Shown here in pieces: positions 1,441-7,606 of a stretch of 64,000 bases of DNA. Within the stretch, counting starts at the first letter, position 1, and every line of letters begins with the position of its first letter. Under the pieces are notes generated by a model, which made no database searches, was not told the DNA's origin, and saw only the letters and a program-made list of their open reading frames with translations. Where the stretch lies: NCBI GenBank assembly GCA_038496445.1, contig JALMLS010000343.1, positions 151,810 through 215,809 on the forward strand, read 5' to 3'. A program made the translations under genes and the position numbers. The stretch comes from Trichosphaerium sp. ATCC 40318. Lineage: Eukaryota; Protista; Tubulinea.

Positions 1441-3542
1441 ATGAACCCTCAGTTTAACTTGTGGTTTGGAAACACCTTTCAGGTACCGTCGAGTAACTAA
1501 TTGTATTAATATTAACGCTTCCTTTAACTACAGTTTTGTAAAAATGCTATTGAGCGAATTACTGGTATAAATACGCCACAAGAGGTTATAGAAGGCGAAC
1601 CAGACCATAAGAGAGTTTTAATTGTATTACCACTCACCAGTAAGTTCCTTTTTCGTCAAAATCTACGAGCGCTCACGCTGTGGTAGCCATTGAGGAAGTG
1701 CCATATGAAATCTTGGCCGCTATACTTGCCTACGAGAGTGCTCCTTTGAGAACTCTATTATCGCGTCGACGGGTTTGTAAGCGATGGAACTATGTCGTTC
1801 TGAACTACACAAACGAGTTGTACATTTTGGTACGTAGTACATGAACGTTTTTTGCAATAAAGTCTCATAAAGTGATGTAGGATAAAGCATGGGTGCCGTT
1901 CATATCACGGTTTAAACAATTAAATCAACTTGTGTTTCATCTCAGCAATTTTAATGATAGGATAATACGGCATCAATTACGAGAGATCAAGTACGTTGTT
2001 TTCTTAGAAAGCCAGTACAAAGGGGAGCTCCATTTTTTTTGTTTGATCCAATGAAAATGGACTTTGTTTTTTTTTTTTTTTTGGCTTACAGAACACACTT
2101 CAAAAGTGTTGATGTTATATGGCTTAATTTAGTCTCTTAAGCTAATATTTCTAGGCATCTACGCGCTCTCAATATTCTTTTCATAGTTTCAAAGGTTGAT
2201 CAAATGCGTCGGGGTAGGTTACGCACTGCTGGCGAGGGATTTTTTCAATCCTTGTCAAACCTTCGATACCTCTACATAGGCGACGATCAAATCACTCTTC
2301 GTCAACTCATGTCCATTATAAAACACTGTAAATACCTAAAATTTCTCTCCTTGGACATTTGTAGAGGCAATCAGAGGTTGGTCGCATCAACGCTTAATTT
2401 TAATTTCTCGCGTCTCCGATTTTTACACCTTACGGTACGCGAGAACGTATCACCAGCATACTTTGGTACGTCACAGCTTTGAGATTTCAAAGACAAATCT
2501 TTTGGTCGAAATTGCGTTTTTCTTATTCTTTACAAAAGGCGAGATAGTGCGTGGTATATCACAAACTACAACATTGCGGTATCTGGGACTTGATTGGACG
2601 CATCCTCAAAAAACACAAAAGGCGTGGGTAGACACTTTAATTCCTATTGGAGATCGTCTCATAGAGTTCCACACAGACCATTTGAACGTAAGACAGACCA
2701 CAATACTATGAAAACTAACTGATTTTTAAAAAAGGTGTCCCAAGCGTTCCTGAACAGTTTATCGCGTGTAACCGCCCTTCCAAAACTCGATTTTGCAACT
2801 CAAGACTTTGTTGTTACGCATCTAACACAATTGGAGCTTTTATGTTGTTCTTCCTTTGCGCTTGAGGGAGACAAGTCAAATTGGCTAGAGAGTCATTCTA
2901 GGACATTATCAAACTTGAATAGGCTCACTATTACAAATTCTCACATAAAGACGAATGAGCTGTCACAACTCATAAAATTTTCTTCCCTTACACATCTTGA
3001 TTTGGTGACCGTTAATGGTAGTCTTGAGCCATTAATAGGCATGAATCAGTTGCGTAGACTTGTTGTAGCATCAACAGAGACGCCTCAAGCCATCAGCAAC
3101 GTCATTGGTCAAATGACGCAACTCTTTGATTTGGGGTACGCCTCGCGGTTTTTTTTTGAGTATCTTTTTGATGTCTACTCGAGCGCGTAGATGATTGAGC
3201 TAACTCTTTTTTTTTATTTTTAGGCTCGTCTACAACGGTAGTGTATTGATCGACAGCCTTACTAAGCTTACACAACTGGCAATGTTGAGTCTTTTGCCTA
3301 GCTTAGTGGAAGACGCTACTCCATTCTTAAACACCTTGGAAACGATGACGTGGTTGTCTAATCTCACCATTGGAAAGGAGCTCATACCTAGCAACCTTGC
3401 TTTACTTCAAAAAATAGACTTTCTAGAAGTTTTAGCTATTATTTCTGTTGCTGATGAGCAAAATGACGGTGTTCAGCCTAATACTATTTGTGCTATACGT
3501 GAACACTTACCATTGTGTAAAATAATTGTAAAACACGCCTAG
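1441..3542 (+). CDS. F-box / leucine-rich-repeat protein (multi-exon)
   Basis: An exon near 1687-1829 encodes IEEVPYEILAAILAY...RRRVCKRWNYVV (F-box). Later exons have LxxLxxLxL repeats (LSNLRYLYI, LTQLELLCC, LSNLNRLTI, SSLTHLDL). The start codon is inferred. Confidence 0.8.
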
Positions 3543-4655: not shown

Positions 4656-7606
4656 ATGACCTTAAAGCCGAAAACTAATACAGCGATATTACTGCTAATA
4701 TCAGTCCTTGTCATCGTATCTGGACTTGAAATAGAGTTTGGAAGAGAAGCTACTGGACCGATTAGTTTCCAGACAGGTACACCCTTCACCAATGTTGCTC
4801 GCTTGCGTCTCCATTCCTCGTCTTCTCACTTTGCGTAATGTCTGCTCACTTTCTTTATTTAGCTCAAAATGTGTTAATGATGTACATTACTGACGCTGGA
4901 GTACCTTTATTCAGTGGACAAGTGCGTATTCAATTTTTTGCCTCCGGAAATTTTTTTTTTCGTATTTATTACAAAACGACAATCTCCACAGGTTTTCAGA
5001 TATTCATATTTATATTTTTTTTAAGGAACAATGGGCGATAGGAACTGCTAATGATAACGCTGTTTTCCATGATTGGACAGACTTTACTTTTTCAGATGGG
5101 TTAGTTGTCACTGCAGAGTTTTCTGGATCTTCTATTTTGCCAAATTGCTTGGAAGGTTCGATTGGTGATGCCGTATACTGTCCTGGTATCAAAGCATACA
5201 TCCGTGACACAAGTGGCGTATTAGCCTCGTACGTAATAATCGAAAAAAAATCGTCATTTTTCGTAAACATTGTGTCGTGGTGAGCGAAAACTAACATTGT
5301 TTTATTACAGGAGCGCTGAAATATACACTGGAAGCAATAATACACTTTCTTGTGATGGAGAGTTTTGGTCACCTTCAGGTGTTTACGACAATGGATTAGC
5401 TTTTGAACAACCTCCTCAACCTTCTATGACATTTAACTTTAACGCTGCTACTCAAGAGTTTGAGTTTGATGTAGATGCTGCGTAAGTATTTTCTGTTCAT
5501 ATCATTTTTTTTTCTGGATTTTTGCTTCGGCTTTTTTTCTTTTATTACATTCCGCCACTTTTTCCGTTATTCATGTGTTTGTTTTAGGTACCTCGGTCAC
5601 GGATACACTTGGGTTATTGACTTCCAACCTTTTGATAATACCGTTGACAGTACTACTTCATACAGTCTCGGAAAAGGTTCATGTGAAAACAGAGATCTTG
5701 GAGACTTTGCTAGTTCAACTTATTCTTTCTCTGAAATGTTCAACTCTGCTCCTCGTTCTGATAAAGCAGATGTAGATGGTGCTCCACCAGCTGCGCTTGA
5801 CTCTGATAGTTACATGGCATACAAACAAGGTGGAAACGGATGGGCCTTGACAAGCACATCTTGCTTTGGTATCCAATACGCAAGGACTTTCTCTGCTGCT
5901 GCCATCGAAGCTTGTGCAGCTGATGTAGCCAGTCCAGGAAGCAATACACTCGTATCAGTAACGTACGTTCACTTGTTTCCCCTATGAAATCTCGAAAGCG
6001 CAGATCTGTTGCTTTGTTGTTTTTTTTTATTTGTAGCGCTATATTGACTTGTCTTAGGAATAATGGTACTTATCTTGAGTTTGCTGGTACTTTGTACGTT
6101 ACAGCTATTCGTCCAAGAGACCTAAATACATACGACACTGGAGCATTAACTCCATACCTTGCTGCTGAGTTTACATTCCCATGGCAAGTTCTTTTCAACA
6201 TGCAAGTTGAAACTTTGGCTGGCGCTACAGCCCAGAGAGAACTCGGTGTACGAAACACTTTCTGCTTATTTTAGTATCAGCGCTGATAATGATTGTCAGG
6301 TTGTATTTGATAGCATCGGTCTTGTAGACGTTGGTAACGGTGAATTTAAATTGGAAGTTGAATTGACAACTGATACTTTGGACTCTGATTATCATCTACT
6401 AGACGCCCCAACTTTTACAGATCCTGTCCCATTGGTTGTCGCATTTACTACAGTAGCAACTGTACGTATTCCCAAACTTTTTTTTTAATGAAATGAGTTA
6501 TTTCTAAAACACGTGACCTTTAGCCTGATCAAGTACAACAATGGGCTTTTGAATCTGACGCTCAATCAAACTTGCTTGATTTCTCTGGTGAATTTATCAT
6601 TCAGTTTACAAGATTCGCTACAAGCGATAGTAGCGAAAAGAACATCACTATTACATTCACTGTTAGTATCACACCACAACTAACACAACGTGAAGAAACA
6701 TCTTTCCTTATTGATATTACATTCCACTCTGACTCAACCTTTAACGATCCTAAATCAGTCTTTGTTCCAGAAGACAGAATATTCGTTTTAACACAAGCAC
6801 AAGGTACTACTTGAAAACCCAAAAAAAAAAAGACTATCCCTCTGTCATACCCACTGAACCATTTTTTTCTAATTTTTTTTTCAAATAGGTAATGATGGAA
6901 GCGGAAACAAAGTTCCTTTTGACGTTGCTGATGTAAATGCTTATTCCAACAGTATCAAGAACGTTTGGATTTGTATAACTACTGATGATTCTGAACCGCT
7001 TAATGATGGTACAACCGATACAGGTTGCAGATCTTTTGCAGGAAAAGTAAGACCAAAGGCTCAAATCGTATCAGACTTTTCAGTAAGCACAGACGATAGC
7101 CTCACCACTGCTTTGGATGGTACTATCCATGCTACCCCTGCAAGTCAGAATATCAATGAAGGTATTTCTTTCTCTGCAACACCTTTGACAAACCCTGCTG
7201 TCGGTCTTTCTGACTCTGGTATATTTTGGATTCATGTACGTTCTAATACCTTTTTTTTTTTTTTTGGTCTGTACTCAAAAAGAAAGAACTTGGCACTGAT
7301 ATCTTTGCTTTAGATTGAAAACATTGTATCTCAAGCCAGCGTCAAAAAGAGTGTCCATACATTCTACAAAAGGGTACGTATCTGAACAATTTTGTTAGCC
7401 CAAGATGCTGGCGTTTGATCAAAACCTACCCAAGAATTATTACTAACTTACAATTTTTGTAGGGTTTGGAACAAAACGGAGATGATGTTCAAGCACTTCT
7501 AAAAGCAAGACTCGATATGTCTATTAACGCAAGTTCACCAGCATCTAACATGTCTGTATGCTTTGTATTGATTCTATGTGCTGCTTTGACTGCTCTATTA
7601 TTCTAA
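4656..7606 (+). CDS. Secreted, probably GPI-anchored surface protein with FRAS1/FREM2 C-terminal-like region (multi-exon)
   Basis: N-terminal signal peptide (AILLLISVLVIVSG). C-terminal SINASSPASNMSVCFVLILCAALTALLF* looks like a GPI signal. Internal motifs QVQQWAFESD..DFSGEFIIQF, SIKNVWICI, GC, EGISFSATPL, FWIH. Confidence 0.75.

Follow-up and report, generated by a model that had tools for sequence, protein, structure and literature searches.

A putative zona pellucida module-like surface protein in the amoebozoan Trichosphaerium sp. ATCC 40318

In its canonical form the zona pellucida (ZP) module has been called a metazoan synapomorphy, the choanoflagellate Salpingoeca rosetta having only incomplete look-alikes of it (PMC13361971), and its conservation has been described as reaching from hydra to humans (PMC7737619). 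Uromodulin is made as a glycosylphosphatidylinositol (GPI)-anchored precursor with a consensus cleavage site and an external hydrophobic patch (EHP) strand in its C-terminal propeptide, and release of this propeptide triggers polymerisation (PMC7737619). Here we describe a gene of Trichosphaerium sp. ATCC 40318 that lies at 4656-7606 on the + strand of a 64,000-nucleotide stretch of contig JALMLS010000343.1 (positions 151,810 to 215,809; assembly GCA_038496445.1), which in its entirety we refer to as the window and whose coordinates are used throughout. On balance we favor the interpretation that its product, together with its amoebozoan relatives, is a surface protein with a ZP-like filament-type module, a cleavage-type site, a blocking strand and an anchor.

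Predicted fold of the membrane-proximal half

The C-terminal half of the ectodomain is predicted to contain two immunoglobulin (Ig)-like domains, as follows.

6300..6685, + strand: Ig-like sandwich in the ZP-N position (approximately residues 374-481; exon 7 and the start of exon 8), without cysteines, carrying KLEVELTT and QVQQWAFESD..FSGEFIIQFTR
6698..7340, + strand: ZP-C-like domain (approximately residues 486-645; end of exon 8, exon 9 and start of exon 10), carrying VFVPEDRIFV, SIKNVWICI, GC, EGISFSATPL and FWIH, with cysteines Cys549 and Cys567

Fold models were made on a homologue, P0002, which shares about 29% identity with the window protein, using an alignment of 19 rows that includes the window exons. 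For the whole of P0002 with the family alignment, AlphaFold2 predicts an all-beta protein of four domains with middling confidence (predicted local distance difference test score, pLDDT, of 64), and the two C-terminal domains alone (P0002 residues 340-625) are modeled with a pLDDT of 81.6. Comparison of this second model with 48,161 PDB representatives using VIA-align, without a Foldseek pre-filter, gives a score of 12.1 to the ZP-C domain of mouse ZP2 (root mean square deviation 3.1 Å, 132 of 159 residues), followed by uromodulin (10.6), the betaglycan ZP-C domain (10.4), the ZPD egg-coat filament (10.1, with 189 residues spanning both domains), ZP3/ZP1 (10.1) and ZP3 (8.8); the best non-ZP match for the ZP-C-like domain scores 8.2. 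A shape search of the ESM Atlas, which is independent of the PDB comparisons, points in the same direction: the Pfam Zona_pellucida domain is present in all ten of the matches listed, which are the best 10 of the 30 nearest models and include ZP2, TGFBR3, uromodulin, GP2 and ZP3, and up to 227 residues are aligned over both domains together (template modelling score 0.55). Foldseek is less discriminating, and although uromodulin ranks first (E 6.6e-7), pairs of single-chain variable fragment (scFv) domains are close behind. The predicted models thus have the bipartite ZP-N/ZP-C arrangement, with 8-15% identity in structural alignments to ZP proteins of the uromodulin/GP2/tectorin type, and from these models we think it likely that the C-terminal half is indeed ZP-module-like in its fold.

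Alternatively, the protein could be a GPI-anchored adhesin or receptor of an ordinary kind, built of Ig-like domains; its likeness to ZP-C would then be convergent, its dibasic motif would have no part in processing and it would form no polymer. Many multi-Ig proteins score in Foldseek, there are weak sub-threshold Pfam matches to Big_9, Cadherin_5 and Ig_GEX2_N, and both ZP cysteines and a ZP sequence signal are lacking, all as an adhesin would have it. We nonetheless regard this as unlikely, because in the unbiased search the ZP-C chains outscore all other Ig domains by about 2-4 Z units, the alignment covers about 83% of the ZP2 ZP-C domain, and both domains superpose together on ZP modules; a further argument comes from residues beyond the fold itself.

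Basic sites, last strand and the proposed mechanism

The segments at the two ends of the precursor that bear on its secretion, processing and anchoring are these.

4656..4724, + strand: signal-peptide-like N-terminus (approximately residues 1-23, hydrophobic core 6-28), from a hydropathy scan
7344..7373, + strand: basic sites in mini-exon 10, KK at residues 647-648 (7344-7349) and KR at residues 655-656 (7368-7373), a candidate proprotein-convertase site
7481..7513, + strand: candidate EHP-like last strand (approximately residues 663-673), VQAL aligned to the family IQAF; P0002 610-620
7526..7603, + strand: GPI-type attachment signal with candidate omega site N678/A679/S680, a 7-residue polar spacer, a 16-residue hydrophobic end and no cytoplasmic tail

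Mini-exon 10 (7314-7373) is only 60 nt long, and its 20 codons, the last of which are those for KR, cover the loop with both basic pairs. These basic sites align with an LP..K(K)R motif that is invariant in the family (K603 and R604 of P0002). The stretch beyond the ZP-C-like core is otherwise variable among family members, except for this motif and an invariant phenylalanine (F618) within a segment of the I-Q-A-F type; because K603, R604 and F618 are invariant in a variable stretch we argue that they mark a functional site and strand, which an ordinary adhesin would not lead one to expect. The KR motif falls in a low-confidence loop of the P0002 models, and the strand that follows it (610-620, pLDDT of about 86) closes the sandwich. 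Crystal structures of ZP-C domains from ZP2 (5bup), the uromodulin polymerisation region (4wrn) and endoglin (5hzv), which we take to be precursor-type constructs retaining the last strand, align through P0002 610-620, and cleaved uromodulin and egg-coat filaments align to the model only as far as the basic motif. At the level of a motif, therefore, ZP-C and the anchor are separated by a consensus-type cleavage site, and the prediction places a last ZP-C strand beyond this site, with a weaker counterpart in the window protein (VQAL vs IQAF). In these models the order of parts – cleavage-type site, EHP-like strand, anchor – is the same as in GPI-anchored uromodulin, and GP2 and the egg-coat proteins share the order of cleavage site, EHP strand and membrane anchor.

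The assignments at both termini are rule-based, using hydropathy and residue patterns. The same type of N-terminal segment starts all full-length family members, all of which also end in the same kind of C-terminus; in the window protein the small residues N-A-S-S precede the spacer of the C-terminal hydrophobic stretch. By this rule-based reading the precursor has both a signal peptide and membrane anchoring, and with five N-glycosylation sequons it is probably a secreted, GPI-anchored surface glycoprotein of an amoebozoan.

Exon 11 encodes the candidate blocking strand and anchor signal as a separate coding unit after mini-exon 10. Between late strands of the ZP-C-like domain lies a short helix made by an invariant E-x-Q-F (P0002 553-556 and the corresponding columns of the family alignment); it is reminiscent of the FXF/alpha-EF element, which in uromodulin makes contact with the EHP, but this is a resemblance only.

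The mechanism that we propose is as follows. Two beta-rich N-terminal domains would be followed by two Ig-like sandwiches that fold and pack like an animal ZP module, and the precursor would be secreted and held on the membrane by a GPI anchor, as both termini suggest. The invariant residues and their position suggest that a kexin/furin-type convertase could cut at the dibasic site. By analogy only, the blocking last strand would then remain with the anchor, and the ectodomain, once free, would polymerise head to tail into filaments of a fibrous test or cell coat. It is a guess that the protein has a role in the fibrous test found in gamonts of Trichosphaerium (PMC10521059), or in Vermamoeba coats or cyst walls. 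Cleavage and polymerisation are put forward tentatively, and that they happen at all is somewhat less probable than the opposite. Betaglycan and endoglin have a ZP-C fold and do not polymerise, and the fold alone is therefore no proof of filaments.

Several observations weigh against a ZP-like interpretation. There are no matches to Pfam Zona_pellucida (PF00100) or ZP-N (PF23344) at E up to 10 among the exons and 14 family members, and no ZP chain was matched when the PDB sequences were searched with the family profile. The eight conserved ZP cysteines with their four disulfides are not evident: the domain in the ZP-N position has no cysteines and the ZP-C-like domain has two (C549 and C567; C508 and C527 in P0002). 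Taken alone, the domain in the ZP-N position finds generic Ig-like ear domains as its best matches, and the Foldseek E-values of the scFv pairs are near those of uromodulin. The structures, moreover, are predictions for a homologue of about 29% identity from 19-row alignments, and the window segment after the basic site, DDVQALLKARL, is less clearly strand-like and could be helical. Finally, because ZP-C is an Ig-like fold, the resemblance may be convergent. A ZP-type cysteine pattern was considered and rejected; the pattern differs from that of the ZP-C domains of mouse ZP2 (5bup), betaglycan (3qw9/4ajv) and endoglin (5hzv). Relative to proteins of the uromodulin/GP2/tectorin type, the window protein has no detectable sequence similarity and neither EGF nor D8C domains, and its host is an amoebozoan whereas theirs are animals; cleavage and polymerisation are here only predicted. 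Because there is no ZP sequence signal and the canonical ZP cysteines are absent, the label that we use is ZP-module-like, and we do not file the protein as a ZP family member. Recent transfer from animals is unlikely, since no animal protein is similar in sequence to the window protein.

It is doubtful, in our estimation, that what this amoebozoan family contains is a true homologue of the ZP polymerisation module, complete with cleavage site, blocking strand and GPI anchor. The ZP-like domains of S. rosetta are found within the Holozoa, the closest relatives of animals, whereas the window family is found in Amoebozoa, outside Obazoa, and our literature search found no paper connecting ZP domains with Amoebozoa. 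If the module were homologous, the ZP assembly mechanism would be older than animals and even than Opisthokonta, and amoebae would use it to build their fibrous coat or test; if instead it is convergent, it would be a clean case of the same activation logic being reached separately. Either outcome is testable in culturable amoebae such as Vermamoeba, whose relatives of the window protein are evidence that more than one species has the module, and in either case the protein is a candidate structural component of amoebal coats, of which the molecular make-up is poorly known.

Family members and the comparison with FRAS1/FREM2

Database searches used single exons or homologues as queries. A phmmer search with exon 9 against 1.84 billion representative proteins of any length (E up to 0.001) returned five proteins, four of which constitute one family, including P0002 (E 5.5e-7). 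The fifth, P0001, has the best score (E 2.5e-7) but is a spurious match: it is a 263-residue low-complexity repeat protein with four short stretches resembling the WICITTDD segment. BLASTP matches of other exons to P0002 are collinear (exon 5, E 7e-17; exon 6, E 5e-5; exon 8, E 3e-7). P0002 itself is a protein of 653 residues encoded on a 2-kb transcript-like contig, and is laid out like the window protein: a signal peptide comes first, the motifs follow in the same order and the end is hydrophobic. Only about 20 relatives, all unnamed and without Pfam domains, were recovered by a word search with P0002 and by a family-profile search (E up to 1), the latter covering proteins of about 360-1,140 residues. 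One is from the amoebozoan Vermamoeba vermiformis (EukProt EP00029; Tubulinea), and the family also occurs in related environmental sequences; family members are roughly 650-700 residues long. The window protein aligns with them end to end, with 26-30% identity over about 630 positions, and keeps 90 of the 168 family-invariant columns.

Other searches were negative. Pfam and NCBIfam gave no match exon by exon; searching PDB sequences with exons 5, 8 and 9, P0002 and the family profile yielded nothing meaningful; exons 8 and 9 had no usable match in a feature search of the ESM Atlas; and a word search with exon 9 gave none either, as expected from the length window of that search. Two homologues, at L003:4510-6879 and L001:963-3122 (608-kb JGI metagenome contig; NCBI GCA_049309705.1), have about three coding blocks as compared with eleven exons here, and some database members (P0027, P0030) contain insertions from read-through introns.

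A preliminary description of this DNA had placed at 5860-7340 a stand-alone module equivalent to the membrane-proximal region in the animal basement-membrane proteins FRAS1/FREM2, related also to sea-urchin ECM3, and had taken it to imply a pre-animal origin of the module. The motifs that it listed are all present and in the order given: C...AC (C277..C294), GTLYVT, KLEVELTT, QVQQWAFESD..LDFSGEFIIQF, VFVPEDRIFV, SIKNVWICI, GC, EGISFSATPL and FWIH. The interval does contain the motif region, but as limits for the gene it is too short, covering only part of exon 5 to part of exon 10. As to the relationship itself, the family consensus QxWxF..DYSGxYxIxFTR resembles a putative FREM2 string given in that description, which ascribes a collinear set of motifs to these animal proteins; our literature search found neither a solved structure of the Fraser complex nor a description of the FREM2 C-terminal region. 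The window protein does share with FRAS1, FREM2 and ECM3 an extracellular, membrane-tethered, beta-rich region beside the membrane; beyond this, the putative motifs are the only link. However, no sequence or profile search supports the relationship: exon 9, which holds four of the listed motifs, has none of these proteins among its five matches, and the family profile (E up to 1, proteins of about 360-1,140 residues) retrieved nothing from outside the family. In Pfam scans at E up to 10 that covered all exons and 14 family members, both the CSPG repeats and the Calx-beta domains of the animal proteins are missing, and in place of a transmembrane helix with a cytoplasmic tail there is a GPI-type anchor with a 16-residue hydrophobic end. 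In addition, the nearest Atlas structures among the matches listed are all of ZP families, in a library that includes chordate proteins. We therefore consider a stand-alone FRAS1/FREM2/ECM3 homologue very unlikely.

Other parts of the preliminary description fared better. Its remark that the second half looks ZP-C-like agrees with the predicted structure and with conservation within the family, as does, as a possibility, the coat- or matrix-forming role that it suggested in a unicellular eukaryote. The basic sites (KK, KR) noted before the GPI-type anchor are present and are conserved in the family.

Gene structure and window context

The gene and the remaining part of its product are laid out as follows.

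4656..7606, + strand: whole gene, 11 exons, 703-residue product (splice model and translation, full-length collinear alignment to the family, exon-wise BLASTP to P0002)
4656-4776, 4863-4921, 5026-5228, 5311-5481, 5588-5962, 6058-6247, 6300-6461, 6524-6803, 6889-7235, 7314-7373, 7463-7606, + strand: exons
7604-7606, + strand: stop codon TAA
4725..6247, + strand: N-terminal half of the protein (approximately residues 24-373), beta-rich, six cysteines

The N-terminal half carries the family motifs PPQP, TWVIDFxPF, CENR and GTLYVTA; in the P0002 model it is of lower confidence, and it was barely covered by the fold searches. The ectodomain has eight cysteines in all, at residues 101, 112, 142, 217, 277, 294, 549 and 567. 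No internal repeats were found in the 703-residue protein, nor any paralogues of the gene inside the 64-kb window.

Because exons 5, 6, 8 and 9 match P0002 collinearly and the product aligns with its relatives from end to end, the sequence comparisons indicate that the gene is real and is a member of a small, previously undescribed amoebozoan family. One could propose instead that the gene model is an artefact, or the gene a pseudogene whose protein is not made, and indeed no identical protein or open reading frame is on record (including by exact look-up of the reading frame at 5475-5984). Against this, removal of the ten introns from between the eleven exons leaves a single 703-codon frame without a break, full-length relatives match the model collinearly over its whole length, and several of these relatives are on transcript-like contigs of about 2 kb with one complete reading frame each, so that we regard an artefact as highly improbable. 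All ten introns are GT..AG and 52-106 nt long, mostly starting with GTACGT (also GTAAGT) and ending in YAG. The window is AT-rich (about 37-38% G+C) and clearly eukaryotic, and these values fit the statistics of the published Trichosphaerium assembly, which has 37.69% G+C, a mean intron length of 75 bp and 8.7 introns per gene (PMC10521059).

Upstream, at 2400-3542 on the + strand, the window contains what resembles, in a by-eye reading, a spliced gene for a leucine-rich-repeat protein, with a TAG near 3540. Further to the right, the G+C content is raised to about 46-48% between 46000 and 60000, with a strongly negative GC skew.
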